Below are positions 31,297-64,000 of a stretch of 64,000 bases of DNA, one piece after another. The stretch comes from Cyanophora paradoxa CCMP329 (lineage: Eukaryota > Plantae > Glaucophyta), in the NCBI GenBank assembly GCA_004431415.1, contig QPMI01000197.1, positions 13,341 to 77,340 on the forward strand. The letters are read 5' to 3'. Each line of letters starts with the position of its first letter. Within the stretch, counting starts at the first letter, position 1. The notes under the pieces are model-generated. The model saw only the letters and a program-made list of their open reading frames with translations, had not been told where the DNA came from and made no database searches. The translations under genes were made by a program, and so were the position numbers.

Positions 31297-32714
31297 CTAC
31301 TTCCGCTTGGCGCCGGCGGGGGGCGTCTTGCGGGCCACCTCCGAGCGGCTCGCCGGCCGCGTGGGGGCCGCCTCCTTCGGCGGCTCGGGCTCCGCTGGCT
31401 TGGCCGCCTCCGCCAGGGGCGCCGGCGGCGGCGGCGTCTCCGCGCCGGCTGCGACCGGACCGGAGGCGCGCGCGGTTAATTTAACATCTCGGTACTTGTA
31501 AATATTCGTGCATGCAAGCGTGCTTCCCCGCCTCCCGTTATCCATGCTAGATCAAAGCGAGTCGTAATGGAGAATGAGATCAACTGCCCAATTGTGTCCC
31601 AACATATACAGCTCTACTCAGCCTCGGCATCGACATTGGCTTCAATTGCGAGCTTCGTCGTGAGCTCGAGCTCCCGCCGCCAGGAGTGCCTTCCGCAGGG
31701 CCTCCAGCCCCCTTTGGCAAAGGTAGCGGCGGTAAAAACCCGCCTGCGCCAGCAGAGCTAGACGCTCGTCGGCACCGACGCCCACCCTTCGCACCTCCAC
31801 GCGTCAGTTTCAGGCCACTCGGAGTTACAATTGCAACCGCAGCGCTCACCAGCCTTCGAAGCAGGCCACATTCGCCGCGTCCTCGTCGTAGTCGGTCAGG
31901 TTGCTGAGCTGAGGTTCGGAAGTCGAAGGCGGCACCGATCGCTCCCAGCATGTTTTCTCCTTGGCGAACACCTCGAGGAGGCCAGCCCAGCTGACGGTCA
32001 ATACAGCATGCGGCCCTGCGCCCTCGAGCTCGGGGGGGGGGGGGGGGGGGGGGGATGGGGGCGCAGGCGTGAGCTAAGCGCGGCGCAGGCGGACCTTGGG
32101 CGGGGCGGGGGCGGCTCGAAGGCGCCGATGTACTCGTCGCCGTTGGCGTACAGCATGCGGCCCTGCGCCTTCGAGCTCAGGCGAGGAAGAGGCGGGGGGA
32201 AGAGGGGGACTGAGTTCCAAGAGGGGGGAGGGGAGGAGGCGGGGGCTGCGAGCCCCCCCCCTTGAAGTACGATTGGTATAGATCTTAGTACGGGCTTAGT
32301 CGTTTTCTTCAATAGTAGATCTTAGCCTGATCTTAGTAGATTCTCTGATTCTTGGGCTTAGGCTTCTTAATAGGCTTGAGCTCAGGCCGCACCCGGCCGC
32401 ACTTGAAGTCGCCGGCCCATTCCCCCTCGTACACGTCCCCGTTCCTGTCCGTCGGGGCGCGTCAGATGAGGCGGAAGCGGGGGGGGGGGGGAGGCGGGGG
32501 GGGGGGGGGTAACGGACATGTAGCGCATGGTGCCGGTGCCGTGCCGCTTGTTGTCGAGCCAGTCCCCTGCGCGGGGATATGGGGGGGGGGGAGAAAGGGG
32601 GGTACGCGGCCCGCCCGCCCGCACCCTCGTAGGTCTCCCAGACGGTCTCCTCCTCTGCCGCCGGTTCGGCTGGGGCGGGCGGGCTGCTGCTGCCCCTCCG
32701 CCCCTCCGCCCCCT

Positions 32715-32748
<34 letters not shown>

Positions 32749-35101: not shown

Positions 35102-35341
35102 CCCCTCCACACCCCCCCCCCCCCCCCCCCCCCCCCCCGCTCTGTATTGGCTACATTAAGCCGTATTGGCGTATTGTTAATAGCCACGTTAAGCCACACA
35201 CATATAAATATCTGTGGAACCTCAGGGGCCTATCATAACTCGAAGCTGAATTGGAAAGTTACCCCATTGAATCAATATATAAACAGACCAACCAACCAGA
35301 CGCTCCAACTGGCTTCTCTCCAACTTGGCCCGCTAGCGCGG

Positions 35342-38195: not shown

Positions 38196-40615
38196 GACGA
38201 ATCATGAGCGAAGTTCTGGTCGCCGCGGCGCCGGCTCCGGCGAACGGGGCGCGGGAGAGGCTCGAACCAGCTCGATGCTCGCCGGCACCGCGGCGCCGCG
38301 CGGCCTGCTGATGCACATGGGCGCACGCGTGCACGCAGGCGCCGTCCAACGACGCTTTACCCGTTGACGCAGTGCATGCCTGCAGTCGCGGCTCCCGCGG
38401 CCAGCGCCCCGGCGCCCCGCGCGAGCTGCAGCGCGCCTCTCGGGGCCCCGCGGCGGATCTGCGGGCGCCCGGTCCCGCCCCGCCGGACCGCGGACTGGAG
38501 ACCTCTCCGCGCGCCCCTCGCCCGTCGCCGCGGCGCGGCCCTCGCCCCGCCCCCGCCCCCGCCGCCCGCGCAGCGCAGCGCCCCGCCGCCCGCCAGTCCC
38601 CGCCGGGCGCCCTCCCCGAAGGGCCGCGTTCGCCCCCGGCCCGCCCCGCCCCGCCCCGCCGCGCGCCTCGAATCCCCTTCCCGCCCTCCCTCGGACGCCT
38701 CGCGCGCCCCCGTACCCCACCCCGCAGGCCCTTCGAGCCGGGCGCCGGCGCCCCTTCGCACGGGCCGGCCCTTCGGATCCCCCGCCTTCCTCCCGGGGAT
38801 CGAGGCGAGCCCCGCCCTCCCCGCGCTTCTTCTGAGGCTTCATCTCGGCTTCATCTCAGGCTCACCTGAACATGAGATCAGGCCCGGCCCGAGGACGCCG
38901 TCCAGTCGGCGGCGCCCGCCGCCCGCCGCCCGCCGCCCGCCCCCGGCCCGCCTTCCCTCCCTCCGAGGCTCCTCGATCCGAGGAGAGTGGGCGCCCGCCC
39001 CGTACCCCCCGACCCCTCTCCTTCGCGGCCCCAAGCCTGCCTCGCCCCCTTCTCCCGGGCCTCGAGGTGGGCCCCCTCCTCCCTCCCCTCCCCTCCCCTC
39101 CCCCCCCCCCCTCCCCCGTCTTTAACCCCCGCCTTACCCCCGCGGTCTCGCCCACTTGCCCTCGCCCCCGCAGATCGCAGGCGTGTGGCGCGGGATATCC
39201 CTACCCCCCCCTTCCCCCCCGGGGCCGCCCGCCCTCCCCCCGTCCAGCTCCCTCCCTCCCTCCCTCCGCGGCGGACCGCCTGCCGCCCGCACGGGCGCCC
39301 CTCCTGCGCCATCGGGCCGCCCGGCCTCGCCCCCCGCTCGCCCCCCCTCCGCCCCCGGGCCCCTGGCTCGGGGCCGTCTGAGCCGTCTGAGCCGTCTGGG
39401 CCGTCTTCATCCGCCCCCGTTTCTCCTCTCCCTCGCGCTGTCCCCGCCCCGCCCCGCCCCGCCCCGCCTCTCGCATAGGCCGCCCCTCTCTTCGCCCCCT
39501 CCTCCGAGGATCCCTCGCAACCGGCCCCCCCTTCGGCCCTCCGCCCCGGCCCGGCCCCGGCCCCGGCCCGGCCTCCGGCCTCGCGGGCCGCGCCGAGGCC
39601 TCTAGATCTGGCGGTGGATCGAGGGCGGGCGCCGGCTCCCTCCCCTCCGCGCCCTCGCTTCCGAGTCCTTCCTCCACGCCGCCTCCCCGCCGGCGCCTCC
39701 CGGCCCCGCCCGTCCCCGCCCCCCGGACTCCGGACTCCGGGAGGACCCCGGCCCGGGAACCTGCAGTTCATTGTTGCAGTTGGACCCGGGACTCGTACCT
39801 GATTACTAAGTCACTAGCCTAGTAGCCATGGTCATGATCACGAGCGCTTGTCCCTTTCAGTGATCATGACTGTCCGGATCCATATGCACGTGATCGTGAC
39901 GTCAACATGTACAGGCCTCGGGCCTTGAAGCACAAACCGTCGAACTATGCACCGCGGCACAGATGTGCAGGGCTCCCGAGGCCTGATCATGAGCCCCGGG
40001 GGCTCGGAGTTCATTGCAGTGCAATAACTCCAGCCTGGCAGAGATCTAGACTCGTATGCATGCCGCGCTGCATGATCATAATCAGGGCCTTGCTATGACT
40101 ATGAGGCTCTTTGTAGCTCCGCGGCCTAGTACTACGCGGGCCTCGGGAGCCCCGAGAGCACCCGCGGCCTCCTCGAGGGGGCGGGGGAGGGGAGAAGGGC
40201 GGGGGAGGGGGGGAGGAGGACAGAGAGGAGGTACAGGGAAATACTTCCGAAAATTCGACTCAAATCTCGACTCAACTGAATCACTCAACCCAAGAGAAAG
40301 ACTTCTGAAGACTAGAGCAAAGAAGAAAGACAAGTACGAACTCAAGCAGGTCAGGCTCAGGGCTGGGAGCCAGGTGCGCAGGGCCGGGCCGGGTCCGTGG
40401 GGCGGGCGGGCGGGGCCCTCAGCGGGCGAGAAGGGCGGGAGGTTTGGGGGGGGAGGGGAGGAGGAGAGGGCCCTCCAGGGGACCCGGCGCGCCGCGCGGG
40501 GCGGGGCGGAGGCGGAGGCGCCGACGGCGGGCGGGGGGAAGCGAGCGAGCGACGGCCTGGGGCCGACCGGAACGAGGCGGGAAGCGGGGCGGAGGCGGGC
40601 GGGGCCTCGGGGCCC

Positions 40616-42135
40616 TCAGGGGCGGGCGCCCTCGTCGCGGGACCCGCCGGAAGGCCGCCTCCGCGGGCGGGCAAAGACGAGCCGCAGGTCGGACGGGATC
40701 TCCGCGGCTGTGGGGCGATCAAATTTCGAGGTTCGGTTGGCTGGTAGAGCGACCTAGGCCTGGGGCGGGGGCGCACGGGCGGGAAAGCACGTAGTGGCTC
40801 GCCAGGACGTCTGCGCAGCACGGGGCCGGGGAAGATCAGGCGCCGCCAGGCACTAGAACAGCCGAGCGGACCCTGGGAGATGATGAGGACGACGCTCGTG
40901 GAGGCGTCGATGATCTTCTCGAGCCTGCGGGGCGGGGGGCCGGCTCGGGTGAGAGCGCGGCGAGCACTCCAGCTCAGAGGGGCGCACTGGTGGAGCTCGA
41001 GGCGGGAGTCGCCGGCGTCGAGGAAGACGCGGAGGCCGGGGCGGGCCTGCTCGAGCTGGAGCTTGAGGGCGAGGGCGAAGTGCCCCGCCGAGGACTGCTT
41101 GTGCGAGAGGAAGACGTCGTACTGGGCCGCTACGGCGGGGCGTGAGGCGGAGGGGCGGAGGGGCCGGCTGCTCCGGAGATGATGCACGGACCGGGGGCGG
41201 GCTGCGGCGAGGGGTGAGGAGCGGGGCGCGGGGGACGGGGCGGCGGGGCGCACCGCGGGGGCGGGGGCGGGGAGGGAGCGGAGGTATGCGAGGCGTTCAG
41301 GCGTTCAGAGGGGATTGCCGCTCACGTCCAGCGTCTGCAGACGGGAGAGTCGGCCGATCTCCGGCGGCAGCGCCGCCAGCTGATTTTTCTCCACGCTCAG
41401 CTTCTGCAGGTTGAAGAGGCGGCAGATCTCCGGCGGCAGCGCCGTCAGCTGGTTGTTGCTCACGAGCAGCTCCTGCAGGCTGGAGAGGCGGCCGATCTCC
41501 GGCGGCAGCAACGTCAGCTGGTTGTTGCTCACGTACAGCTCCTGCAGGGCGGCGAGGCGGCCGATCTCCGGCGGCAGCGCCGTCAGCTGGTTGCTCTGCA
41601 CGTTCAGCCACCGCAGGGCGGCGAGGCGGCCGATCTCCGGCGGCAGCGCCGTGAGCTGGTTGCTACCCACGCCCAGCGTCTCCAGGGCGGCGAGGCGGCC
41701 GATCTCCGGCGGCAGCGCCGTGAGCTGGTTGCCGCTCACGCCCAGCGTCTGCAGGTTGGAGAGGCGGCCGATCTCGGGCGGCAGCGCCGTCAGCTGGTTG
41801 TCGTTCACGTACAGCGTCTGCAGGGCGGCGAGGCGGCCGATCTCCGACGGAAGCGTCGTCAGCTGGTTGCTCTGCACGTTCAGCCACCTCAGGGCGGCGA
41901 GGCGGCCGATCTCCGGCGGCAGGTCCGTCAGCTGGTTGTTGGTCAACCACAGCCACTCCAGGTTCGTCAGCTTGGCGAGCTCGGCCCCCGGGATGCTCGT
42001 GAGCTTGTTCTCGCCAAGCTCGAGCCAGCGGATGTTCTCCGGCCCCGCCGCCGCGATCTCCGCCGCCGGCCACTCCGTCCGGTCCTTCCCCCCCAGGTCC
42101 AGCTTCCCCTCCGCGGGGATCCACTACTTGCCCAT
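40616..42135 (-). pseudogene. LRR-TIR copy D (11 LRRs + TIR type 2), pseudogene
   Basis: ATG GGC AAG TAG gives a stop at codon 4 (GAG in copy B). It has the same post-LRR TGA as B (41305-41307). The TIR lacks the GEVRHAARAGKNIVLLHDEKSCR segment, including the putative catalytic Glu. Confidence 0.85.
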
Positions 42136-42934
42136 GCCTGCGGGACGGTCAGCGGCAGAAGCGCGCCTCGGGGAGCGCGCCCCTGCCCCGCCCGGCGGGT
42201 CCCCAGCCTGCAGGGGGCCACCCGAAAGCGCCATAGCACGCTTCTAGGCGTAGATTCTAGACCGGGACCCGCCTAGCGGCAACTAACAGCAATCCAGCCT
42301 GGCAGGCCATGCGCCCGCCCGGAGGAGCGCACCTTCGACGGATCGCCTTCCCGGTTCCCGCACGCCCGCTACTCTGTGCAGGGAGCTGCGCGCCGGTACA
42401 AGCGAGCAGTGAGCGAACGACAGGCGAGCGATGCCAGAAACCCGTCAGCTTCGATTCGCACCTGCCGCCCGCAGCCGCCGAAGAGCCGGGGTACGGTCGC
42501 GCCGCCGCTAACTTTAGTAACCCGCTGCTGCAGCTGCGCTACTTCGAATTCCATGCATGCGCATATGGCCGGGCGCTTGCGGGCGCGGGTCTGTCAGACC
42601 CGCACTGCATGTACTCCAGAGCATGTACATGTACATGTGCCAGCTTTCAACATGTGCCAGCTTTTAAACATGTGCAGCTGCAGTGCAGGTGACTCAGCGC
42701 TTTCAACATGTACATGTGCCAGCTTTTAAACATGTGCAGCTGCAGTGCAGGTGACTCAGCGCTAGCGCTAGCCTCGAGCCTCGGAGCTCATGATCATGAT
42801 TAAGGCCTCATGATCAGGGCCTGGCAAAGACTCTCAGAGTCTTCGCGGGTCCTAGGCCCCATGGCCAGGCCCGTCCTAAATGCCACCCGGCATCTCGAAC
42901 CCTCCTTTCTTCCTCCCTTCGAATTCGCGGCTCC

Positions 42935-45900
42935 CTACTTCCGCTTGGCGCCTGCGGGGGGCGTCTTGCGGGTCACCTCCGAGCGGCTCGCCGGCCGCGC
43001 CGGCCCCGCGGCCTCCTTCGGCGGCTCGGGCTCCGCAGGCTTGGCCGCCTCCGCCGGGGGCGCCGGGGGCGGCGGCGTCTCCGGCTGCGCCCGGACCGGA
43101 GGGGACGCGCGCGGTGAGCCGCAAATAAACCTAGCTGGATACAAGGGCCTCTAGCGCAGGCGCAAGCGGACCTTGGGCGGGGGCGGGGCGGCTCGAAGGT
43201 GCCGATGTACTCGTCGCCGTTGGCGTACAGCATGCGGCCCTGCGCCCTCGAGCTCAGGGGGGGGGGGAAGAGAGGGGGGAGGGGGGGGGGGGGCGTGGAC
43301 CCGGGGGACCGAGTTCTAAGGGGAGGAGGGAGGAGGCGGGGGAGGGGAAGGCGCCGGGCGTCTAGAAGAGGCGCCGAGCGGCGCGGGGCGAGGGGGGCGG
43401 CGCCCCCACTTGAAGTTGGATTGATATAGATCTTAGTAGGGGCTTAGTCGTTTTTCTTTAATATTGAATCTTAGCTAGATCTTAGTAGATCTAGATTCTC
43501 TGATTCTTGGGCTTATGGTTCTTAATAGGCTTAAGATTAGGCCGCACCCGCCCGCACTTGAAGTCGCCGGCCCACTCGCCCTCGTACACGTCCCCGCTCC
43601 TTTGGAGGAGGCGCCTCAGATGAGGGCGGGGGAGAGGAGGGGGTGGGGGGTACGGACATGTAGCGCATGGTGCCGGTGCCGTGCCGCTTGTTGTCGAGCC
43701 AGTCCCCTGCGCGAGGATGAGGGGGAGGGGGGGGGAAGAAAGGGGGGGTACGCGGCCCGCACCCTCGTAGGTCTCCCAGACCGTCTCCTCCTCTGCCGCC
43801 GGTTCGGCGGGTGCGGGCGGAGCAGCAGGAACCCCCTCCGCCCCCTCCGCTGCCGCCGCTGCCGCCGGCGCCGGCGGCTGAGCGGCCTCCGAGGGGGCGG
43901 TACCCGGCCGCGAGGCGGGCGGGGAGGGCGCCGGCGAGGGCGAGGGGCCGGAGGGGGCGGAGGGCTGAGGCTGAGGCTGAGCGGGCGCCGAAGATACCGC
44001 TGAGGCCGGGGCCGGGGCCGGGGCCGGGGCCGGGGCGGCGCGCGGGGGCTTCCTCGGGTACCGCGCCGCGCCGCGGCCGGTGCGGACGCCGGACTTGAAA
44101 TCTGAGCGACGGCCCCCGCGATCAGCGTCCATGCGACTCTTGAACTATTAATCTATTAGAAGCTTATGCCGCCAGGAGATTCTTAAGAAGACGCTCGAGA
44201 GCGCGACAGGCGAGGCCCCCCACCCCCCACTCCCCCATAAAGGCCGAACGCCCTCGCGCTCCCGCCGCGCGCCGCGCCGCGCCGCGCCGCGCCGCGCCGC
44301 GCACCGCCGTCGTAGACGACGCCGTTGCGGTACTCCGCGTGGCCCCCGGGGCCCTGCGCCCCGCCCCGCCCCGTGAGACAGGCTCGGGTCGGCCACGCTG
44401 GGCGGATGGGCGGGCGGGGCGGTGCCTCGAGTTCGTTTAATCTAGCGGGGGCGGGGCTTGGGGGGCGGGGGGGGGGAGGGGGAGGGTGGGGGGGGGGGGT
44501 GCGGGGCGGGGCTGGGGGGGGGAGCCCGGGGGGGGGGGGGGGGGGCGAAACATAGCTATGGTACTATCGTAGTCATAGTTCTACAATAATCATCAAGGTA
44601 AAAAGCGGAGCCGGTGCGGGGGCGGGCAGGGCTTCACTATAAATCGGTTAAGCTTTAGGTCCGTTGAGCTTTTAGAGTTTAATCTAGCGGGAGCGGGGCG
44701 GGGCGGGGGCGGGGGCGCACGTCGCGGTCGCCCATGACAAAGGGGCCGACGTAGAGGACCTCCCCGTCCGGGCCCCCCGCAGGCCCGAACCTGCGCGAGA
44801 GAGGGGATGAGACCGGATCGGATCGGATCAGCCCTGGCTAGCTAGCTCCTGGCGTCGGCTTCGGGTCCAGTGGGCCGTGGGATCCGAAGGGCCGACCCGG
44901 AGGCGGGGAAGGCGGCTTAGAGGCCCCAAGCATGTAAGCCCCGAGTGCTTCTAACCAAGCCGTCTCAGAGTACCCCGACGAACAGCTGCCACGAGAGGAG
45001 ATCACGGACTGGAGATCGTATGAGCCCTCGCAGGCCCTAAGCCCCCGCTATCTATGAGCCCCGGACCTATACGAGCCTCCAGCGCTTATAACCGAGCCCC
45101 AAGAACGCAGCGCGGTGGCCCAACGCCCCTCTATCTATCTATCTGCCATCCCTAAGCCCCAGGCCCCTTGCTTTTTATTCAAGCCCCAAGAAAGCGGCGC
45201 GGACCGGAGGGTGCCGTGCCCGTGCCGGGCGATGGAGTGGCCGTGGGCGCCCGTGAAGGGCCCCTCGTACACGTCCCCGCTCGGGTGCTCCTCCACCCCT
45301 GCGAACAAAGTTCAGGGGGGGGGGGGGGGGGGGGGGTGGGGGGGGGGGGAGGGGTACCGAAGGGGAGGCCGTCCTCGAGCCACTCGCCCGAGAAGCGGCT
45401 GCCCGTCTCCGCGACGGTGAGCGCGCCCTGCTCGGATCAGATCAGATCGGATCGGATCGGATCTGATCAAATCAGATTAGATCGGAGCAGAGGGCTCACC
45501 TGACCCTGCCGGACGCCCTGGTTCCAGTCCCCCTCGTACTTGTCCCCGTTCGTGTACAGCATAACGCCCCGCCCTGCGCTATTTTAAGGGGGGGGGGAAG
45601 AGACGAGGGGTACGGGCTCGGGCTCGCACCGTGCCGCACGTTGCGGCGCCAGTCGCCCGTGTACACGCGGCCGTCCCAGTACGTCATCGTACCCCCCGCC
45701 CCGTCCATCGCGCCCTCCCTCCACGGGCCCTGCACCCCAGGACGGTTCAGGGTGGGGGGGGGGGTGAAGACGAAGGGGGGGTACGGGTACCTGGTAGACG
45801 TCGCCGTTGGAGAACTTCATGAGACCCGAGGGACCGGTCATCTGACCGTCCACCCACGGCCCCTCGTACACCTGTACCCCCCGAGAAACAATTCATAAGC

Positions 45901-47118
45901 CTCTCAAAGGAGTGGGGGGAAGGAGTTAAGGAGGGGTACGCACGTCTCCGCCCTGGAAGCGGCACGTGCCGCTCCCGTGCCTCAAATCGTTCCGGAAGTC
46001 GCCCTCGAACGTATCCCCTACCCCCCGCCTCGCCCGTCACGAACCGCGCCGGGAGAAGAGGGGGGAGGGAGCGGGCGGGGGGTACCGTTGGGAAGGTGCT
46101 GGAAGCCCTTGCCCTCGCGGCGCCCCTCTACCCAGCGCCCCTGGTACCGCTCCCCGGTCGCGTACAGCATCATGCCTGAGCGGGGATTACGTCAGATCGG
46201 ATCGGATCAGATCAGATCAGATCAGATCAGATCAGGTGAGATCTGAGCCGCACCGATGCCGTTCCTGTGCTCCCCGAGGAAGTACCCCTCGTACCGGTCC
46301 CCGTTCGCGTACCAGAACGTGCCTGCGGGGCCTAAGCTGAGAAAACGGATAGAAGGAGTAGGAGTAGAAGGAGTAGGCTCTTAGAAGAAGCCCCCCCGCC
46401 CGCCCGCACCTTTGCCCTGCCGCGCGTCGTTGACCCAGACGCCGACGAAGCGGTCGCCGTTAACGTAGGAGTACTCGCCGGGCCCGTGCTTCAGGTTGTT
46501 CACGAAGGCGCCCTTGAAGCGGTCCCCGCCGCTGTACGTGATCTGGCCCGATCCCTACAGCCTCGGAGGTCAGCAGGGGCGGAGAGGCGGAGCCAGGCGG
46601 GGTTCGCTCGCTCGCTCGCCTCGCGCCGGTCGTCGACCCACTCTCCCTCGTACAAGTCGCCGTTCTCCCACTGGTACGTGCCGTACCGGTGCCGCACGTC
46701 CTTCGTCCAGTTCCTGCGGGCCGCGGGCGCGGACGCGGACGTGGACGCGGCGGTGGCTCAGCGGTGCGGCGGCGGTGCGGGAAGCGGGAGAGGGGGCGGG
46801 AGCGCGGCGCAGCGGCTCGGGCTCACCCCTCGTACTTCGCGCCGTCGTGGTAGAGCAGCGTTCCTGTGCCCGCGCGGATTCCATCGACCTCGGGAAGCAC
46901 GGGAAGTTCGACAGGCGGCGGAGGCGGCGTGGGCTCCTCCGGCGGCTGCGCGGCGGTCCCAAATCGTCAGAGGCTGTGCCCGGGGAGCGCTCGCGGCTTC
47001 GCGGGCGCACCGGTGGCGTCGGCGACTTGAGCGGCTCCGGCGGCGGCGGCGGAGGCTCAGCAGCGGCTGCCGCGGCTGCCTTCGACTCTCCCTTCTTCCC
47101 TGCTGGCTTCGGCGGCAT
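42935..47118 (-). CDS. MORN-repeat protein (many repeats; radial-spoke-head/PIP5K-like MORN family), multi-exon
   Basis: Starts MPPKPAGKKGESK. Repeated YxGxW/FxxxxRHGxG motifs: NGDLYEGEWVDDRRE, GDRFKGAFVNNLKHGPG, GDKYEGDWNQGVRQGQ, VYTGDWRRNVRHG. Confidence 0.88.
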
Positions 47119-50300: not shown

Positions 50301-53243
50301 GGAGGGAGGGAACGGAAGTCTCGAGATATTCCGGTCTAGACCTTCTTTACGCTTCCTGCGCCTTCCTAGGGTCTCCGATAAGAAGAGTTTAGATCTTCTT
50401 TAAGCTTCCTACGCCGCCGCCCCTCCCCGATCGCAGCCTCTTCTTAGGTTCTTCTTCTTCACAGCCTACCCCCTCCTCCCCTCCCGCCCGCCCGCCGGGC
50501 CGGGGGAGGAGGGAATGAAAGTTTCGAGATCTTCCGGTCTAAATCTTCTCTAAGCTTCCTTAAGATCAACCTCTTCTTAGGGTCTTCTTCACAGCCTAAC
50601 CCCTTTCCCCCTCCCGCCCGCCCGCCGCGGACCTTGGGGAGGGCGACGGGGCTCGGGGCGTCGTGGACGAGAGCCGGCGGGAGGCTCTCGTAGAGCGCCA
50701 GGCTGCACTTCCCCGAGTCCATCCAGAAGCGCTGCGGCAGGGGGGCGGGGGGGGAGGGGCGCGCGGGATCGAGGCGCGTCAGCGGGGTGCGAGGCTGGGA
50801 GCTTGAATCATAGAGATTCGAGCATAAAGAAGCATTAGCAACAAAGCTGTTTATTGGAAAGCTTGGAGCTGAGAGCTTAACGCAGCTAACAGCTTAAACG
50901 ATGGCGGCAAAAGTGCGGAGGTCTCGGTGAAGCTTGGAGCTTAGATAGAGGATTGGAGCTGAAAGGATTTGGAAAGCTTAGAGCTAGAGAGCTCAACGAA
51001 GCTAACAGCTTATATTAGACAGGGCGCACGCGGGCGATGGCGGCGAAGGTGCGGATTTGGCATTTGGGGGAGAATTCTCTAAGGATTCTCCAAGAATTCT
51101 CTTAGGAGGCTCTTCTCCTAAGGGAGGCCTTGGGAGGGCTTAGAGGGGGCGCGAGGCTGGGAGCTTGGATCATAGAAATTGGAGCTCAAAGAAGGATTAG
51201 CAAGATCATTCTTCTTAGGAAGCTCTGTAGCTAGGCACTCTTCTTTGGAGGCGAGGCGTGCAGCCAAGCCCCGTGCGCACGCGGGCGATGGCGGCGAAGG
51301 TGCGGAGGTCGGTGAAGATGGCGTCGTAGGGCCGCACGGTCACCAGCGGGCCCCAGCCCTCCGCCACGTCCGCCACCTGGGGGGGAGGGAGGGAGCGGCC
51401 GCGTGAGCGGGCGGGCGGGCGGGCCGGCGCGCAGAGGAGGTCCAGCGCTGTACCCCCCCCCTCTGCTGCACCACCCCCCTCCTGCCGGCCCCCCTCCCAG
51501 CATGCGAGCGGGCGGCGGCCCAGCCTGTATGGGAGGAGGTCCAGCCCCCTCCCGGCGCCCCCCCGGCGCCCCGGCGCCCCCCTGGCGCCCTGGCCCGTGG
51601 CCCTGGGCGGGCGGCGGGCGGACCTTGGCCTCGTCGACGTAGAGGAAGACCGAGTCCAGCGTCACAAGGCAGTACCTGCGCCAGGCAGACCAGGCAGCTC
51701 AGCACGGTCCAGGGGCCAGGATCTGTTAAGATGTGTTGGTGAGGAGCTAAGGCGGCGCACGCGATGGTGACGGGGTTGAAGGAGACGTCGAAGCCGCGCA
51801 TGTTCAGCAGCCCTGCGATGCGGAGGGGGGGAGGGGGAGGGAGGAGCCGTCAGCGGTGAGGCGCCGGGCGGAGGGGGCGGATGGGGGAGGGGGCGGAGAA
51901 GGGGGGAGGGGGGTACGCGCATGCGATCTCGTCGAGGGTGGGCACGACGAGGCCGTAGCAGCCCTGCTCCCCGAGCCTCGCCCGCACCGCCTCCACCTGT
52001 ACCCCTAGTGAGGGGGAGGGGGGGGGAGGGGGGGAGGGGGAGGGCAGGAGAAAGGGGAGGAGGAGCGGCGGAGCTAGGCAGGGCGAAGCAAGGCAGGGCG
52101 AAGCCGGGCGGCCGGGCCGGGCTCGGTATGGACGGCCCACGGTCCAAGCCACAGCTCGGTTTGGGAGGGGGGTACACTCGCCTTCTCGGCGACGGAGGAG
52201 CCGGCGTACTTCTCCGGGTGGGGTATGGCTTTGCTGAAGGGCGCAGGGGGCCGGTCGGCGCCCCAGACGGCGTCGACGAGGTTCTGCTCGACGCCCACCA
52301 GCTCCTGGCCCCGCGCCTTTAGCTTCTCGCGCAGCTGCTTGGCCATCCCTGCGCGCCCGCCCGCCGGCGACGGCCGGTCAGCGGAGCCCGCGCTGCCCGC
52401 CAAGTTTCTCCGTTCCTGCGCACCGATCGAGAGGACGGTCGGGTCGACGCCGACGCGGCCGCCCGAGCTAAGGTTCTGCGGAGGCGGAGGCGGTCAGTCG
52501 AAGCCGCGCGCGCTCGTGTGGCGCGCGCGCGCGCGCCTCGGCGAGCCAGTCGGTGATGGCGGGCGTGTCGGGCAGCCCCGCGCGCATGAGCGTCCAGCAG
52601 GAGCCGTCCAGCTCCTGCTCGGCCTGGAGGAAGTAGCGCCCGTCCGTCCAGAGCATCGCCTTGTCCCGCCCGATGAGCGCCGTCCCTTCGTTCGCAATCG
52701 CGCCGCGGAGCCGAAGTCAGCGCCGCCCCCGCCCGCCCGGACACGCGACCGATCGCGAGGACGAACCCGCGCTGCCGGTGAAGCCCGAGATGTACTCCCG
52801 GCGCGCGTCGCAGCTGGCGACGTACTCGCTCTGCGGAGGGACGGTTGGATTAGATCTTAATGACGGCACGCGCGCCCCGCCCGCCGCGCCTGGTGCGCGT
52901 CCTCCGACGGGACGATGTACGCTTCGAGGTTGTGCTGGAGCATGTGCGCTCGGATCCTGTTCAGCTTCTCCTGCGCCGTCGTGAAGCCGGCACGCTGGGT
53001 CGTCGGCGCCGAGCTGTGTGCCGCAACCGACGTCGCCGCCGGAGCCGCCGGCCGATGCACTGCAAACTTCACCGGAGCGCCGAAGAACTGCCGCTGCCGG
53101 CCCGGCCGCTCCGCAGAAATCGCCGGACGCAGGAGCGCGCGGCTCTGCGGGCGGCAGGACATGGCCCCCAGGCAAGCGACCCGCATGGCCACCGCCGCGC
53201 CACGAAGCGGGACGACGGCGAAAGAGAACGCGTCGTGCCTCAT
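47400..53243 (-). CDS. Xaa-Pro aminopeptidase (aminopeptidase P, M24B; XPNPEP1/APP-like) with N-terminal extension (possible organellar transit peptide)
   Basis: Motifs AYIVPSEDAHQSEY..CDARREYISGFTGSAG, LWTDGRYFLQAEQELD, NLVDAVWG, LLLDSGGQY.DGTTDVTRT, GLDYRHG/TGHGVGAFLNVHEGP, EPGYYEDGAFGIRIEN and VPIQRKLIDVSLLT. Confidence 0.93.
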
Positions 53244-54314: not shown

Positions 54315-55035
54315 GCCCGCCCTCGAGCCCGATCGCGAGGCTTGAGCTCGCGCCTTCCCACCGTCCTGTACCCCCGCCCCTCCGAGTCCCCCTCCCCCTC
54401 CTGGGGGGGCCTCCTCGAGCCTGGAGCTCGCCTTCTGAGCCGGGGCGCGCCCTCCCCCCCCCCTCCCCCCTCCCTCTTCACACTCCTCAGGTCGCGCGGC
54501 CTCTACCCCGCGCCTTCCCTCCCCCCCCCTCATCTTCCTCCCCATCTTTCCCCTCATCCCTGGGCTCGGAAATTGGAACAGCTGGCCTAGAATAGCACAA
54601 ACTAGGACAGCAATGCGTTTGAAACAGCTAGGACAAACCAGACTAGGGCATAACAGAAATTGGTATGCGTAAGACTTGCCCGGCGAGGGAGACTTCGGCA
54701 AAGAGTGACAGCGAAGAGAGAGGGGGGTGCGGCATCTCTCCTCTTCGGGGGCCGCGGCGCGGGCGGCAGGGGCCGACGGACGGGGGAGAGGCCGCCGGCC
54801 GTTCGGTCGCCGGGAGAGGCGAGCGAGGGCCCCGGGCCCGGGGGCGACGCCTCGGGCAAGGCGCCGGGCCGGTGGAGAGGCCCCTCTCGCGGCGCCGCCT
54901 CACTGCACGCTGCAGGACTTCTCCTCTGAAAAGTACTCTGAATACAAAGTATAAACAAACAATTGCAAGTACATATCAAGAAATGCAAATACAATTTACT
55001 GGACGCTGCATATTTGAAATTAAAGACCAGACGCC

Positions 55036-56903
55036 TCACTGTACGCTGCAGGACTTCTCTTCCTCCGCGGGAGCGGCGGCGCTGGGGCCGGGGCGGGGGC
55101 CGGGAAGGGAGCTCCCGTGCCGCAGGAAGTCGCGCAGGCCGGCGACGAGCTCGCCGGCCGCCGCGTCCGCTGCGGCTGTCCCCTGCCCCCGCTGCATCGT
55201 CCAGTTCACCGACGCCAGCATCATCTGATGGCGAACGTGAGCTGAAGTCGGGAAAACGCAGGGTTCGGGCAGCGACGTGGGCGCCGGCGCGCCCTGTAGT
55301 CGACTGGTAGCTCGACCGACTTGGGGTCCACGAGCCACACTGCCGCCCGAGAATGAGGCCGGGCGAAGGGTGCGGGGCGGGCCGGCAGGCAGGCACCGGG
55401 GAACTTGGGGATGCGCAGCTGGTGATGAGCGAACTGCATCTGCTGGGGGATCAGGCACGGAAGCCTAGCCCTGGATCGGGGCGGGGGGCTGCGGCGCGCC
55501 TCGTCGTCGCAGTTGTTGGAGCGGATGTACGCTGGCGAGAGAAAGCAGACGTACGTCCGGCAGCGCTGCATCGCCTCCTGCGCATGCCGCGCGCCCCGCG
55601 CGCTCGGCATGCCGGAAGGCGCGAGGCGGTGGGCGACGCGCACCCCGATCTTGGCCATCCACTTCTGGCCCGCCTTGAGCTCGCGGTCGACCCTGCGCGG
55701 GGCAAGGGCGTCAGCGGAGCGGGGGCGGGGGAGGGGGCGAGGGAGAGGGGTGGCCTTGGAGGGGGGCGAACCATATTTTGAAGCCTGCGGCTTCGAGAGC
55801 GTCGCAGTAGCGGAAGACGAGCGCCGCGTCGACGTGGGCGTAGCTGCAGGCGGCGTGAGCACCGGCAGCGTGCGGTGGAGGCCGGGACAAACACCTCACG
55901 AAGCAGTCCCAGGCCTTGCCGTCGGCGGCCGGCTGCAGCGGGGGCGGGTGCTGCGGGACTGCAGCAGGCGCCTGCTGGGGGCGCTGGGCGGCCGGCGGGG
56001 AGGGCGCCGCTGCGGGGCGGGCTCGCGTCGGGGGAAGGGAAGCACGAGCGGGGGTACACTGACCGGGGGCCGGAGGGGCGCGTGCGGCGGGGGCGGCGGG
56101 CTGCGGTGGCGGGTGAGTGCGCGGTGGAAGCGAGGGGCGGGGCCGGGTGCCGGGGCGGCGGGGCGCACCGCGGGGGCGGGGGCGGGGAGGGAGCGGAGGT
56201 AGGGCACGACGGCGGCGAGCTGGGCTTCACCATCATACTCGTTCTCGTTGACGGCGCGGCGGACGGCGGGCCACGAGTCCACGACTGGGTTGCCATCCAC
56301 GTGCAGGTACTTCAGGGCGGCGAGGCGGCCGATCTCCGGCGGCAGCGCCGTCAGCTGGTTCTTGCTCACGTACAGCTCCTTCAGGGCGGCGAGGCGGCCG
56401 ATCTCCGGAGGCAGCGCCGTCAGCTGGTTGCCGCTCACGTCCAGCGTCCGCAGAGCGGAGAGGCGGCCGATCTCCGGCGGCAGCGCCGTCAGCTGGTTGT
56501 CACTCACGAGCAGCTCCTTCAGGGCGGCGAGGCGGCCGATCTCCGGCGGCAGCGCCGTCACCTGGTTGTCGCGCACGAACAGCTGCTGCAGGTTGGAGAG
56601 GCGGCCGATCTCCGGCGGCAGCGCTGTCAGCCGGTTGCTGCTCACGCCCAGCGCCTGCAGGGCGGCGAGGCGGCCGATCTCCGGAGGCAGCGCCGTCAGC
56701 TGGTTGTCGCTCAAGTACAGCTTTTCCAGGTTCGTCAGCTTGGCGAGCTCGGCCCCCGGGATGCGCGTGAGCTTGTTCCCGTCGAGGTCGAGCACGCGGA
56801 TGTTCGCCGGCCCCGCCGCCGCGATCTCCTTCGCCGGCCACTCCGTCCGCCCCTCCTCCTCCAGGTCCAGCTTCCCCTCCGCCGGGCTCCACCCCTTGCC
56901 CAT
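55036..56903 (-). CDS. LRR-TIR receptor copy E (8 LRRs + TIR type 1), apparently intact
   Basis: ATG at 56903 (MGKGWSPAEG). In-frame splicing leads to WDCFVSYAHVD...YVCFLSPAYIRSNNCDDEMQFA...MMLASVNW...SCSVQ*. Confidence 0.88.
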
Positions 56904-58079: not shown

Positions 58080-60943
58080 CTCCGGATCCGGCGATCGGGA
58101 CCGTCGGACCGGACGCGGGCAGCCTGCAGCTGCGGCTCCGGGATCCCATGCTCGATCGAAACACGATCGGAGTTTCTGGTCGCGCACTGCCGCAGCTCCT
58201 TCTGGCCGCCTGCCGTGCACTGCGCGCGCGCGAGCGAGCGAGAGAGGGAGATTGTCTCCTCCGCCCTCCTCCGCCCCGCCTAAGAAGGTGCGCCGGCTGC
58301 GTGCGCGCGCGCCGGCGAACGCCTCCCGTACGCGTGTCGGCGGCGGCGGCCCCCGACTGCTTCCACCGCGTCTTCATGGACGTGCGCCCTCGCGCCCGCC
58401 GCCCCGCCCCGCCCCGCCCCGCCCCGCCCCGCCGCCACGGCTCCCTCGCCCGCTCCTGACGGCGCCGCCCCGCCCGCCTCGTCGCCGGCAGCGCTCCACG
58501 CCCGTCACGTGAGATCCCGCCCGCCGGCGCGCTCCGCCCACCCGCCGGCGCCTGACCGCCGAGCGCGCAGCAGGGACGGCCCGCGGCGCGGCGCCCGCGC
58601 TCCCCGCGTGGCGCCGGCGGCGACCGGGGCGGGCGGGCGGGCGGGCGGGGGCGGGGTTCGAGCAGTAGGATAGATGCGAGGGAGCTAGGTCCCTTGCGGG
58701 TGTGGCGGAGGCGCTAGGCGAGCTTCCGTTTTAGAGGCGGTGGCGTCCCCCGTTCTCGAGGCGCGGAAATGCGCGCACCTCGCGGGGCGGGCGGGCGGGG
58801 GCGCGGCTGGCCCCGCCGCTCCATCGTCGCCCGCGCCGGCCACGCACGCCGCCAGAGGTCTGCCGCCCGCGCGCCCGCCCTGCGCCCGCCTCGTGCCGCC
58901 CTCGCCGGTACCGGGCGCCGGCGCGGAGGACGGCGCCGCCCGCCGAGCGCCGGCGCGGGCGAGCGGGTGCGCATGCGCGCCGGCGCGCCCCCACCCTCTC
59001 CCACGCCTGACTGCGGCGCCCCCGCCGGGGGCCGGGCAGCTGGAAGAGCGTTCCCCTCGAGAGGAACGGTGGGCGCCGCGCCCGCTGCGGAGGAACGCTC
59101 CTCCGCGGCCTCGAGCCGAGCTCAAAGGGCCCTCACGGGGGCCGCCCCTCCCCCCTCCCGCCCGGGCCCCGGGCGCTCCCCCCGCCCTCCCCTCGCCGCT
59201 CCTGCGGCGGCGCCGCCTCAACGCCGCCCCGCCCCCGCCTTCGATCGAGCTCTCCCCGGCCGCCCGCCTCGAAGGTGCGCGGCCGGCGGCTGGGCCGGAG
59301 GCGCCTTCCGCGAGCCTCGCGAGCGCGTCGCTCGCAGAGGCGGCGGCCCCGCAGGCGGCGGGCGGGGCGGCGGGGCGGCGCGCGGTGGAGCGGGGCGAGC
59401 GGTGGGCGCCGCCGCTCGCCCCGCCGCCCTCGACGGGCGACGCGCGGGGGCCAGCCCTGCGGGGGTACAGGTGGCCCTCGGGGGCGCCGGGGCCGGCCTC
59501 GCCGGCGGCCCGGGCTCCCCGGCCTCCCTGGAGCGGGAGGAGGGGGGCCCGGGGCCCGGGGCCCGGAGCCCGGGCCGGCGGGGCGCCCCTGGGCCTCGAG
59601 GCCCTCGCCCTCGTCGCCGTCGGCGGCAGCGGTGCGCCCGCCCCGCCCGCCCCCGCCCCCGCCCCCGCCTTTGCGGGCCCTTCCCCTCTTCTTCTTCTTC
59701 CGCTTCGAGGGTCGGAGGGAGGTCCACCCGCCGCCCCTCCCCGCGCCCCTCTCCGCCCCGCCCGCTGCCCTCCGCGGGCCGCCCCGGGCCCCCCGCCCGC
59801 CACAGCTCCTCCCGGGCTGTCTCTTGGCCCGCCCCTTCAGCCCCGCTCCGCGCCGGATCCGCCGCGGGCCGCCGGCCGGCCGGCCGCCTCCCCGCCCCTC
59901 CTCCTCTACCCTCCGAGCCCGAGCTCCCGTACCCCCGCCCCGCAGGCCTCGTCCCCTCCCTCGTACTTTCCCCCTCCCTCGCCGCCTCCTTCCCCCAAGG
60001 CCGACCCCCGCCGAGCCTCTGACGAACCGAGGAGGGGATCCGGAGCTCGATCGCGAGGGTCGGAGGGGCGAGCGGCACTGGAGCGCGCTGCACGGCCGGC
60101 GGAGCTAGCTAGAGCTTTGCAAGCCATCACTGATATTGAGAGAAGTTCTCTAATGTACGAGAGAGCGCTGGAGCTGCCATCGGGCCCCAGGGCGCGGGCG
60201 GAGGGGGCGCCCCGAGCCCGCCCCTCGCCGCGGCCTCCCTCCTCCCCGGCCCGCCGCAGCTCAACCCCCTCGGTCCCCCCCGACAGCACAAACACTCTGG
60301 CTGGGGCGCAAGCATCTCGGGCGCTGGGGCTGCCAGTGATCGCTTGAAAAAGGCCCCGGACAGATCAGATCCGATAGTGAACATAGTGCCGAACATAGTG
60401 CTGAGGCGGAAGCGGGGGGGGGGGGGGGGGGGGGCGCGGGGGGGCGGAGGAGAATTCGAAGGGGAGGGACGAGGGTTGCGCATGCGCACAGTCCCCTTGC
60501 CTCCTTCCCTCCCCTGCTACCCCCCTTTCTTAACCCCATCCCCCCCGGCCCCCTCGGGGGGAGCCTGTAATGCAACTCTTTTTGATGATTACAGGCTTCA
60601 CGCCGTGACAAGACAATGCGAAAGAATAAATACTAGCACTTCATAAAAAACGATGATCCTTTCGTATTTAAAAAGTAGAACTTGCTGAATCGTAGCTAAC
60701 TGCAAATTGCTAGAAGTAAGCCTCGGCCTTTCAGATGAGATGCATGACACAGCACATGGACTAGAATCCGATGATCAGGACCAGCACTTTGCAATGAGAG
60801 GCGTACTGAAAGAAGCAGTAGTAATTGCAACTTTTTGAGGCTCCAAAGGCCAACTTCTGACCCGACCGAGCTCGGACGCTGCGGGCGTCCGGGACGGCGA
60901 GGCCGGGCGAGGGCCGAAAGATGATCTGCGGGTGGCCGCCGGC

Positions 60944-62920
60944 CTACGCGAGCGGCGGCGGGAGCGACTCGTACGGCTGCGGATGTTGTCAGCGGTGGGC
61001 GAGGGGGGTGGGGAAGGGGTGGAGGGCGGACGGGGACGGCGGCGACGGCGGCGTCGATGAGGGCGCAGAGTTTCGCGAAAGACGCCTGCTGGTACATGTT
61101 ACTGAAGAAGACCGCTGAGGGCAGCCCCGGGACGCGGCGTCAGCGGCGCGCGGGGCGGGCGCCGCGGCTGCGCCGAGCGCGGCGGGGCGGACCGTTGTGG
61201 CTCGAGAAGGCGGCCATGTCGGCGGGGAGGCCGTCGCAGGCGGGGAACTTCTCGTTTGGGTCGTCCACGAAGGGGATGATGGCCTTGCGCAGGTACAGGC
61301 TCATGACGACCTCCTTTCGGACCCTGCGCCGCGCCCCGCGGGGTGGCTTGGCTTGCGGGGCCGCCGGGGGGGGCGGACGGCACCAGTCGGTGGAGAGGGC
61401 GGCCGAGGGGGCCTTGTCTTCGAAGCAGCGGTCCAGGGTCCCCGGCGTGAGCACGAAGACTGCGCCCGGGCGTCAGGAGGAAGGCGGGCGAGGCGGGGGC
61501 CGCCGGCGGGACGCGCCGTCGCAGCAGGAGCGGCGGAGGCTCTCGAGGATTTTCGGGCCGAAATTGCCGCCCTGGAGGCTCTGCAGGTCGTAGAAGACCT
61601 TGTAGCTGCCGCAGTTTCAGGCGTGGAAGGGCGCGAGGCTGGCGCGTGTGGCCGCACCCGATCTTGTCGAGTGCCTCGCGCACGAGCGCCGCGAGGAGGT
61701 TCTTCTTGTCCTTGTCCGACCGCCGGTACGTGATGCTGCGCGACCTCAGGGGCGAGCGAAAGGAGCGCGGAGGAGGCAAGGCGGCGCACAAGGCGTGGAA
61801 CTCGTAGCCGGGGGGCAGCGGCGGGGCGCGCCGGGCGGCGGCGCTCTGCGGGCGGGCCCGGGGCGCGTTCGGCGCCGCGCTGGCGAGGCCGTGCTCCCTC
61901 GCGAGATCGGAAATCTACAGCTGCGTCAGGTAGGTCCGAGGGAGGGGCGGGTGGCGGGGAGGGAGGTGTGCCTTTAGGAGCAGGTTGCGGCGGACGAGGC
62001 CCGACTCGACGCCGAGCTCCTCGCGCAGATCGCCGTCGGTGAGGGTGAGGAGGACCTGCCCGTCGACGGCGCAGCCCTCGAAGGCCGGGGCCAGCCTGCC
62101 GAGGTCGAGGGACCGGAGCCACTCGCAGACGTCGGCCACGCGCATGCCCCGCGGGTCCTTCGCCGCCGCCGCGGGGGCGGGCACTGCCGGCGCGGGCGCC
62201 GCGGCGGGCGAGGCCGAAGGGGCGGCGGCCGCAGGGAGGCTGCGCGCTGTCGTCGGGAGGCGGGAAGGCGCGGGCGGGGCGTGCGCGGACCGGGGGTTGA
62301 AGGGCCGGGGCGGCGGAGGGGCGCGGGCGGGGGCGGGGCGGGGCGGGCTGCAGCGCGGGGTGAGAGGCGGGGCGCGGGGGCGGGGCGGCGGGGCGCACCG
62401 CGGGGGCGGGGGCGGGGAGGGAGCGGAGGTAGGGCACGACGGCGGCGCACTGGGCTTTACCGTCGCTGCGGTTCTCGTTGACGGCGCGGCGGACGGGCTC
62501 GGGCCACGATTCTAGCTGCTGTACCCACAGCTGCTGCAGGGCGGCAAGGCGGCCGATCTCCGGCGGCAGCGCCGTCAGCTGGTTGTCACCCACGTACAGT
62601 GTCTGCAGGGCGGCGAGGCGGCCGATCTCCGGCGGCAGCGCTGTCAGCTGGTTAAAGCTCACGTCCAGCACCTGCAGGGCGGAGAGGCGGCCGATCTCCG
62701 GCGGAAGCGCCGTCAGCTGGTTGCTCTGCAACCACAGCTTCTCCAGGTTCGTCAGCTTGGCGAGCTCGGCCCCCGGGATGCGCGTGAGCCTGTTCCCGTC
62801 GAGGCGGAGCCAGCGGATGTTCTCCGGCCCCGCCGCCGCAATCTCCGCCGCCGGCCACTCCTCCCGCCCCTCCCACCCCAGGTCCAGCTTCCCCTCCGCC
62901 GGGATCCACCCCCCGCCCAT
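60944..62920 (-). CDS. LRR-SAM-TIR receptor copy F (4 full + 1 partial LRR, SAM, SARM1-like TIR)
   Basis: The SAM reads MRVADVCEWLRSLDLGRLAPAFEGCAVDGQVLLTLTDGDLREELGV. The spliced TIR reads HAFITYRRSD..LLAALVREALDKIGYKVFYDLQSLQGGNFGPKILESLRRSCCDVFVLTPGTLDRCFED..DWVRKEVVMSLYLRKAIIPFVD..LPADMAAFSSHNAVFFSNMYQQASFAKL. The linker exon (~62291-62347) needs a 1-2 nt indel in its C-runs to join frames. Confidence 0.82.
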
Positions 62921-64000
62921 GCCTGCGGGGCGGTCAGCGGCAGAAGCGCGCCGCGGGGAGCGCGCCCCCGCCCCGCCCGGCGGGTCCCCAGCCTGCGGGG
63001 GGCCGCCCGGCCCGCGCTGAGCCCCTCCCGCAGGGGGCGGTGCACGCGCGCGCCGGGCTCTGCCTTTACCGGCCGCCCCGCCCCGCCCGAGCCGCGGCTC
63101 GGGGGAGCGGACGGCGGCCTATGGGAGATTGCACCCCCACGCCCGGGCGCGCGCTGGGTCCTCCCCCCGCTGGGTCCTCCCCCCCCCCCCCCGTTCGTGG
63201 GTTGGCGAACGAGGCAGCAAGCAACGCCGGAGCGTGGGGCCCCCCCCACAGGCCCGAAACCAACAACTCGCCCCGCATCTTATCCGACGTCCGCGCGCCC
63301 GCCGCGTCGCTTGGTGGGATCAGTGCGACCCCTCGCACGCTGCTAGGCGACCCGTGCGGCCCAGAGCGAATTCGAAGCGATTCGTAGATTCTAGACCGGC
63401 GCCGGCGGGGTCCGCCCAGCGGCAACTAGCGAGCAACCGGGGTTCTGCGCCCGCCCGGAGGAGCGCACCTTCGACGGATCGCCTTGACGCAACAGATCCG
63501 AGCTTTCGGAACCGACGGAGCCCGCCCGGTCAGAAATCCTCGCCGGACGCGCGCTGCCTGCTGGCTGCTCGCCCGCTGTTCTGTGCAGGGAGCTGAGGGC
63601 CGGTACAAGCAAGCAATGAGCGAACGACAGGCGAGCGATGCCAGAAACCCGTCGGCTTCGCACCTGCCGCGATGAATGCCGATGAATTTCACCGAAGCGC
63701 GGGGGTACGGCCACGCCGAAGCGCCGGGGTACGGTCGCGCCGCCGGGTTGCGGGCCTCTGCTGCTTTCATGGCGGGCGGGCGGGTCTGTGAGCTGCATAT
63801 ACCTATAAACGGCGTCCCGGACCGGTGCACCACTGCCTGTCCACTTCAACATGCGCCAGCCTTGCAGAGCGATCATGATCAGGACGCAGGCGCAGCTGCA
63901 GCTGCAGTCATCAAGACGCAGCTGCGCCGCGGCGCCTGCGCAGCTGCATCTGGTGCAGCCGAGGCCCGAGGCCATGGTGGAGCATAGCCCCGGCCACGGT
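62921..64000. repeat. Shared upstream block, copy F (runs to window edge)
   Basis: Near-identical to the blocks upstream of A, C and E. Confidence 0.9.

Follow-up and report, generated by a model that had tools for sequence, protein, structure and literature searches.

Can a SARM1-type TIR be coupled to an LRR sensor in a single-celled alga, and how would such a protein be switched on? In SARM1 the SAM domains form an octamer in advance, which ARM keeps inactive (PMC11874154, PMC7688312), and the enzyme is activated by ARM deletion or by forced TIR dimerisation (PMC7688312). SARM1-like TIRs outside animals have already been published: choanoflagellates have SARM1 homologues with the catalytic Glu (PMC6040629), and SARM1-like TIRs occur in amoebae, green algae and dinoflagellates (PMC13142454), the latter study, a 2026 preprint, recording no evidence yet of TIR-regulated cell death in microeukaryotes. 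Within a 64,000-nucleotide stretch of Cyanophora paradoxa DNA (the window), the first-pass annotation had proposed a SARM1-like SAM-TIR effector with a variable LRR sensor in place of ARM. Neither this architecture nor any paper on Cyanophora SARM1-like or LRR-TIR genes was found in the literature searched, of which coverage was incomplete, and the accessible part of the TIR atlas supplement holds no Cyanophora entry. To our knowledge, next to nothing has been described of immunity in glaucophytes, which branched early within the plant supergroup.

Gene structure and transcription

The minus strand at 60944-62920 holds a spliced gene of ten exons encoding, in order, LRRs, a Pro/Ala linker, one SAM and a TIR (Table 1). 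The gene runs from a start codon at 62920, with an in-frame stop upstream of the ATG, to a stop codon at 60944. An exact look-up identified its gene model, P0002, as EukProt EP00741 Cyanophora paradoxa P004883 (tig00000841_g4738), whose ten aligned segments span 62920 to 60947 of the window; the N-terminal 62 residues used as a query returned P0002 at 100% and 17 relatives. Introns are 51-78 nt long with GT-AG or GC-AG ends (a GC-AG intron precedes exon 4), most have a branch-like motif 9-12 nt before their end, and exons 4-10 are all open with consistent phases. A GA donor for exon 6 was rejected because the GC donor agrees with the paralogs and with P0002. Exon-by-exon Pfam scanning detected the LRR (LRR_4, E 1e-28, within 62399-62920) and the SAM (E 3e-11, within 61921-62262) but not the TIR, the single TIR exons being too short; in P0002, the spliced model through which the TIR was analysed, TIR_2 scored above the Pfam cut-off. 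The LRR part comprises only three full 23-residue repeats, together with a capping repeat and a shortened last repeat. A 69-nt repeat lies at 62527-62723 in exon 1, and most of the LRR was modelled at pLDDT >90. By inspection of the sequence, exon 1 encodes no signal peptide and no membrane helix, and the C terminus of the protein has no CaaX box.

Table 1. Coordinates of the LRR-SAM-TIR gene, its linker G runs and its paralogs in the window.
Feature	Position	Strand	Basis
5′ UTR intron, 546 nt, inside the ~1 kb upstream cassette	62923-63468	minus	read-contig ends
Exon 1: start codon, family-specific N-cap, LRRs of 23 residues, C-cap; 174 codons, phase-0 end	62399-62920	minus	Pfam LRR_4
Exon 2: Pro-rich linker, 57 nt assembled, probably 58	62291-62347	minus	splice signals, alignment to 57 kb paralog
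Exon 3: Ala/Pro linker and most of SAM (SAM from near 62157)	61972-62239	minus	Pfam SAM_1/SAM_2, E <1e-10
Exon 4: last part of SAM helix 5, linker between SAM and TIR, start of the TIR	61790-61914	minus	P0002 266-306
Exon 5: strand A and helix A of the TIR, with the Tyr-Arg-Arg motif (SARM1 568-570)	61658-61735	minus	P0002 mapping
Exon 6: strand B and BB loop of the TIR; D594, G601, F603 kept, E596 = Gln	61517-61605	minus	
Exon 7: strand C of the TIR and the SARM1-specific loop (Asp-Arg-Cys, SARM1 627-629), 5-residue insertion	61384-61459	minus	
Exon 8: catalytic Glu codon 61313-61311, W662 position = Phe, N679 kept	61193-61323	minus	
Exon 9: strand E and helix E; H685 position = Asn (61100-61098), Y687, Q688 kept	61032-61114	minus	
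Exon 10, coding part and stop	60944-60976	minus	joint at 60976, three guessed-RNA runs
3′ UTR	60576-60943	minus	spliced contigs X15 to 60618, X16 to 60576, mismatch-free
G run one base short relative to a DNA run (shown)	62234-62236	plus	X1 contig
G run that probably lacks one base in the assembly	62302-62304	plus	X1 contig end, P0019
Paralog P0008: same promoter-LRR cassette, type-A TIR, CaaX end	55036-56903	minus	exon-by-exon mapping
Paralog: LRR and type-A TIR (3′ end approximate)	35340-36996	minus	
Paralog: LRR and type-A TIR, without last exon (3′ end approximate)	11850-13372	minus	
Paralog: nine LRRs and type-B TIR, assembled with an in-frame stop near 27833 (approximate 3′ end)	27090-28664	minus	
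Paralog: nine LRRs and type-B TIR, assembled with stops at codon 4 and near 41304 (approximate 3′ end)	40700-42135	minus	

Twenty sequencing runs match the stretch wholly or partly; none is recorded as RNA and six were guessed to be. Three of these guessed-RNA runs and one DNA run (X1) were assembled against the stretch. The splice joint at 60976 was present in all three guessed-RNA runs, 35 leftover contig letters fitting the donor at 61031, and the splicing of their contigs shows these runs to be RNA. Contigs were mismatch-free in exons 1, 3, 7, 8 and the 3′ end, being identical over 62480-62566 and 62624-62758 in exon 1, 61991-62143 in exon 3 and 61225-61324 in exon 8, while an X17 contig at 61383-61460 breaks at the edge of exon 7. 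The LRR-SAM-TIR gene is therefore transcribed and spliced. The exon 4/exon 5 junction was also seen, in guessed-RNA contigs of a paralog. No listed RNA joint covers exon 2, exon 5 had no guessed-RNA coverage in the runs examined, and no contig joins LRR to SAM or TIR among those listed for the three guessed-RNA runs; a single full LRR-SAM-TIR transcript is what we infer. Upstream, loose ends at 62924 in the guessed-RNA runs X15 and X16 match an exon end at 63471 and so delimit the 5′ UTR intron within a ~1 kb cassette common to three neighbouring LRR genes, the contig's copy of origin being uncertain as the 16-mer at that exon end also lies 5′ of four paralogs. A second copy of the same TIR, with deeper coverage, is transcribed from elsewhere in the genome.

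A frame break in the linker as assembled

The first-pass annotation had cautioned that the linker exon needs a small homopolymer indel, and this was borne out: in the assembly, exon 2 has a phase-0 end, and the two candidate acceptors, which need phase 1 or 2, both miss the SAM frame. The X1 contig at 62114-62304 (depth 37) has zero mismatches and one G added behind 62233, which alone permits an in-frame path. Its alignment ends exactly at 62304, at the end of a three-G run, with 44 letters left over (62309-62356 was left out of the read-contig alignment as repeat), and the paralog P0019 crosses this point in a shifted frame. With both Gs added, the acceptor at 62240 is in frame, its 51-nt intron with a branch motif 12 nt from the end resembles the other introns and matches the phase-1 intron of the neighbouring paralog, and the product would have about 487 residues. 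An alternative acceptor at 62246/62247 was disfavoured, as it would leave a 44-nt intron with its branch 5 nt from the end. Of these two sites, only the second, probable one lies inside 62290-62350, where the indel had been expected; the indel that is directly shown lies outside this interval. P0002 avoids the break by an earlier donor that costs it the LRR C-cap, and its linker is for this reason probably wrong. The break is probably a sequencing or assembly error, although X1 may come from another strain than the reference, in which case the break could be strain-specific.

A SARM1-type TIR preceded by one SAM

Against PDB sequences the TIR matched SARM1 at E 2e-20, compared with E 0.009 for the best non-SARM1 TIR. 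An AlphaFold model of SAM-TIR (pLDDT 91) matched the SARM1 TIR with a TM of 0.90, and the TIR model superposed on SARM1 with Z 21.1 and an rmsd of 1.6 Å over 139 residues, the best non-SARM1 TIR reaching Z 14.9. Identity to SARM1, dSarm and TIR-1 is 34-36%. By sequence and modelled fold, then, the TIR is SARM1-type, as the first-pass annotation had proposed on motifs alone and had suggested should be checked by alignment and modelling. All the motifs it listed were found on the minus strand, across exons split by short introns.

We number SARM1 positions by taking Y568 and E642 as anchors. On this numbering F565, Y568, R569, R570, D594, G601, F603, D627, C629, D637, W638, E642, N679, Y687 and Q688 are kept; these include the BB-loop residues Asp339 (D594) and Gly346 (G601) of P0002, the Asp-Arg-Cys of the SARM1-specific loop (372-374; SARM1 627-629) and Glu392 at E642, so that the catalytic Glu is conserved as had been claimed. 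Five positions have changed, E596 to Gln, K597 to Ser, W662 to Phe, G680 to Ala and H685 to Asn. The motif-by-motif likeness to SARM1 held for the motifs, whereas the changes at H685 and E596 were absent from the earlier reading. The H685 position, on the EE surface, is Asn437 in P0002; it is His in 26 of 30 animal-type rows, and the Asn is shared by 7 of 14 relatives from Cyanophora and by 7 of 95 that are prokaryote-like. Phe at W662 and Ala at G680 are common across the wider clade, the catalytic Glu is present in 13 of the 14 Cyanophora relatives with a nearly invariant main pocket, and this copy has a few private changes relative to the family consensus. In human SARM1, E642A, Y568A, H685A, D594A and G601P lower activity (PMC8266388) and E596K abolishes it (PMC7688312); H685 and Y687 are required, H685 for NAD+ binding and two-stranded assembly, and the effect of W662A is modest (PMC11874154). 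Because the pocket and catalytic Glu are kept but H685 and E596 are changed, we estimate that the TIR is quite likely, though not certainly, an NADase, and the gene probably works like SARM1 at this domain.

One SAM only was found, by Pfam and by the structure model, ahead of the TIR as had been claimed. A family SAM profile ranked SARM1 first in the PDB, partly through summed tandem domains; per domain, animal and Trimastix SAM1 scored mostly 33-49 bits and ANKS6, the best other solved SAM, 37, a modest lean to SARM1 SAM1. To call SARM1 its best match would be too strong, as SARM1, ANKS6 and BICC1 tied in a single-sequence search and structure comparison gave a near tie (Z 14.3 versus 13.6). 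It is plausible that SAM and TIR were inherited together as one module.

Kinship of the TIR

A search of 1.84 billion representatives returned 3709 TIR matches at E 0.001. All seven beyond 1e-30 were from Cyanophora; the remainder mixed animal SARM1, bacterial TIRs (Clostridia, Verrucomicrobiae, a bacterial contig) and protist proteins, the bacterial TIRs reaching the scores of animal SARM1. In a tree of 96 rows, which leaves out 20 long, duplicate or partial rows (Trimastix among the rows omitted), four outgroups and every third row of large groups, the Cyanophora TIRs formed one clade (100/99). This clade sided with eukaryotic SAM-TIR proteins at a support of 71/81 in a tree that has no reliable root, and forcing it into the prokaryote-like clade, whose rows are mostly unlabelled, was not rejected (p-AU 0.30); trees with distant TIR outgroups were unstable. 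Shared eukaryotic descent and a separate transfer from bacteria are both compatible with these sequences. With no ARM, one SAM and a TIR that fits either origin, the LRR-SAM-TIR gene is not a SARM1 orthologue.

A canonical ARM-bearing SARM1 of Cyanophora was sought in P0028 (tig00020830_g14506) and not found. P0028 has an apparent signal peptide, an ectodomain rich in Cys, a single membrane helix and a TIR of SARM1 type with the W683 and H685 positions kept, a TLR-like topology with an enzyme-type TIR. In the further Cyanophora proteins P0026, P0080, P0023 and P0020, the SARM1-type TIR is accompanied by WW domains, by a RING finger or by a ZZ finger together with a SAM, or forms a tandem pair of TIRs. 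ARM-like, SAM and TIR parts occur together outside animals in Trimastix marina (P0129, a transcriptome entry and possible contamination, with two SAMs and a pairwise match to the bovine SARM1 ARM region at E 6e-13) and in the choanoflagellate Salpingoeca urceolata (P0146), and such parts are also present at L001:3001-5724 and L002:85-1791.

An LRR gene array with an exchanged cassette

The window holds six minus-strand LRR genes: the SAM-TIR gene, three that encode a type-A TIR and two that encode a type-B TIR. Types A and B score only 10 and 6 bits against the SARM1-type TIR, compared with 77 for bovine SARM1. Nevertheless, the SAM-TIR gene and its type-A neighbour show 97.9% identity over the 600 nt upstream, the range for the type-A copies being 95-98%, the first intron donor is common to all six genes, and the same N-cap is found on TIR-A, TIR-B, SAM-TIR and RING proteins, including a second SAM-TIR variant elsewhere in the genome. 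Upstream DNA and N-cap shared across different effectors mean, at the level of sequence, that a promoter-LRR cassette is exchanged between effector types. A length-limited N-cap search, with thin glaucophyte sampling, found no close relative outside Cyanophora paradoxa.

The variable LRR sensor of the first-pass annotation was also recovered. Over 35 repeats, five exposed positions take 4-8 residues each and vary at codon positions 1 and 2, whereas framework positions take 1-4 and are almost fixed. The pN/pS was 1.7 at exposed and 0.5 at framework positions, values to be read in the light of a GC3 of 0.96, which depresses pS, and of repeats that are not independent. N-cap coding identity to the type-A neighbour (90.7%) is below that of the upstream non-coding DNA, and pairwise selection tests on the first 80 codons were not significant. 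Because of the GC3, the dependent repeats and these tests, the data are suggestive, not proof, of diversifying selection at the exposed positions.

Several further features of the array were noted. The CaaX-coding end of the neighbouring type-A gene occurs twice (54900-54923 and 55036-55059), the second following an AG acceptor and forming a possible alternative last exon, and the same CaaX tail is present in the SAM-TIR relatives P0020, P0024 and P0169. In both type-B copies an in-frame stop lies at the end of the LRR exon (27833, 41304), and the codon-4 stop of the 42 kb copy is at 42126; they are either broken copies or share assembly errors. Segmental duplications of 75-92% identity lie between the LRR genes (15216-17869 and 24132-26525; 29900-35100 and 38900-46000), and the array therefore grew together with adjoining DNA. 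A block of 43-54% GC at 1-11600, in a genome of about 70% GC, adjoins the 13 kb LRR gene at its truncated 3′ end. The block comes with a tandem repeat of 360 nt (10201-11161) and another of 15 nt (11619-11707); three ORFs within it had no Pfam match, and it is possibly an inserted element. An exact 353-nt tandem duplication at 21948-22655 may be an assembly artefact. The minus strand at 52500-53200 reads, by its motifs, like the start of a spliced gene for an Xaa-Pro aminopeptidase; a tRNA scan and ten other ORFs of the window gave nothing.

Proposed mechanism and its alternatives

We propose that the LRR-SAM-TIR protein is a cytosolic immune-type receptor of Cyanophora paradoxa activated by ligand clustering, a proposal to which we give an even chance. 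The concave LRR face would bind a foreign or damage ligand, and a repeated or multivalent target would concentrate receptors whose single SAM could then polymerise head to tail. The TIRs would form a two-stranded assembly as in SARM1 and cleave NAD+ via Glu392, the outcome being NAD+ loss or ADPR/cADPR-type signals that might arrest or kill an infected cell. The protein would stay off because it is present at low concentration and has no SAM octamer assembled in advance, with no need of an ARM-like clamp. This clustering model is supported by the retained SARM1-type pocket, the exposed LRR variation, cassette exchange, splicing and the frame-restoring indel; H685 Asn and E596 Gln, the lack of a contig joining LRR and SAM, and the broken state of other array copies count against it.

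That the LRR instead acts like ARM, holding a pre-assembled oligomer off through TIR or SAM and releasing it on ligand, is unlikely. The domain order is the same as in SARM1, the family SAM profile gives SARM1 SAM1 domains 38-49 bits against 37 for the best other solved SAM, and a brakeless SAM-TIR is constitutively toxic in animals, so that some brake is needed; the protein has, however, one SAM without the octamer-forming tandem pair, and about 50 low-complexity, disordered residues separate its LRR from its SAM. Moreover, one LRR cassette, variable on its concave face, serves several effector types: its presence on two other TIR types and on RING domains argues against a TIR-specific autoinhibitory role, and a swappable, hypervariable cassette on three TIR types favours a clustering sensor over ARM-like autoinhibition. 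A full-length AlphaFold model, weak evidence in view of its pTM of 0.36 and shallow alignment, showed no domain packing or contacts. The LRR does stand in place of ARM by position, as first claimed, whereas an ARM-like role for it is weakened by the long linker, the lack of modelled packing and the shared cassette. It is unlikely, too, that the TIR has only weak enzyme activity or serves as a scaffold, making little second messenger or nucleating the TIRs of the array, with no NAD+ depletion or killing. The differences from SARM1 at H685, W662, G680 and E596 would fit such a role, the first at a residue that SARM1 needs for both NAD+ binding and assembly (PMC11874154), as would the several TIR types side by side in the array, and products are not predictable from TIR phylogeny (PMC13142454); yet the catalytic Glu and pocket are conserved among the Cyanophora relatives, and the W662 and G680 replacements are those of the wider clade.

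A transcribed pseudogene in the reference strain, where a genuine frameshift in the linker would prevent synthesis of any LRR-SAM-TIR protein, seems highly improbable. The assembled gene has no in-frame acceptor and no RNA joint across exons 1-3, the DNA runs contain only 71-75% of the stretch's words, and neighbours with stops, the shortened last LRR and the few private TIR changes point the same way, but an otherwise identical DNA contig has the extra G, both suspect sites are short G runs, and every downstream exon is open and in phase. Very unlikely also is a non-immune role (stress, development) or a neutral expansion, with LRR variation arising from gene conversion and no pathogen selection. 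Tandem 69-nt repeats invite conversion, the positional tests were not significant, and we know of no pathogen ligand for glaucophytes; conversion alone sits poorly with variation limited to exposed strand positions and codon positions 1 and 2, with N-cap coding more diverged than the non-coding DNA upstream, and with a birth-and-death array of swapped effectors.

Comparison with known systems

The protein shares with SARM1, dSarm and TIR-1, which are ARM-SAM-SAM-TIR NADases, the TIR subtype, catalytic Glu, BB-loop Gly, SARM1-specific loop and a SAM before the TIR. Unlike them it has no ARM and hence no NMN/NAD+ allosteric site, one SAM in place of a tandem pair, a variable LRR on a long linker and Asn at H685, and it belongs to a multigene family where SARM1 is single copy; by architecture it is not a SARM1-family member. 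Non-animal SARM1-like proteins likewise place a SARM1-type TIR in a unicellular eukaryote, some with a single detectable SAM (P0067, P0177), but their N termini are ARM or ARM-like in those checked, and a motif scan found no LRRs in the 150 best TIR matches outside Cyanophora. Bacterial TIRs of the SARM1-containing clade (clade 8, PMC13142454) have the same pocket residues and score as high as animal SARM1, but lack SAM, LRR and introns, and their TIR is often N-terminal.

Toll-like receptors (LRR-TM-TIR) also carry an LRR N-terminal to the TIR, and ligand-driven proximity is the model proposed here; the Cyanophora protein differs in having no signal peptide or membrane helix, in its SAM and catalytic Glu, and in a TIR that is not clade-1 (TLR TIRs gave Z 14.5 or less against its model). 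With plant TIR-NLRs (TIR-NB-ARC-LRR) it shares a cytosolic variable LRR, tandem birth-and-death clusters and, as proposed here, an oligomer-driven TIR NADase, but it has no nucleotide-binding domain, the reverse domain order and a SAM as putative oligomeriser, and TIR-NLR TIRs fall in another clade (Z 13.8 or less). Pfam found neither NB-ARC or NACHT, the mark of NLRs, nor ROC-COR, the mark of Roco proteins, in P0002; the LRR matched one bacterial Roco partially. PADLOC matches to bacterial TIR defence (Thoeris, TIR-SAVED, TIR-APAZ) were weak and partial (E 5e-6 at best), and unlike these systems the Cyanophora gene carries spliceosomal introns.

Taken at the level of sequence, these results point to an immune-like receptor system, not described before, in a unicellular alga. 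The Cyanophora LRR-SAM-TIR family offers a direct test of TIR-regulated cell death in microeukaryotes, and a natural SARM1-type TIR with one SAM, no ARM and no His685 would reveal which parts of the SARM1 mechanism are essential; an LRR-gated NADase, as predicted here, could serve as a programmable switch. As to the origin of SARM1, ARM-SAM-TIR proteins in a metamonad and a choanoflagellate, together with this algal SAM-TIR, suggest that the module may be old in eukaryotes. A wider reading, which we offer only tentatively and consider doubtful, is that Cyanophora has evolved a diversifying intracellular receptor system without a nucleotide-binding switch, in which a recombining promoter-LRR cassette has been shuffled onto a SARM1-derived SAM-TIR NADase, other TIRs and RING ligases, the SAM-TIR module descending from a SARM1-like protein that predates the split of animals and plants. 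If true, LRR-TIR immunity would have arisen by a third route besides TLRs and NLRs, and TIR-driven cell death would extend to a unicellular alga.
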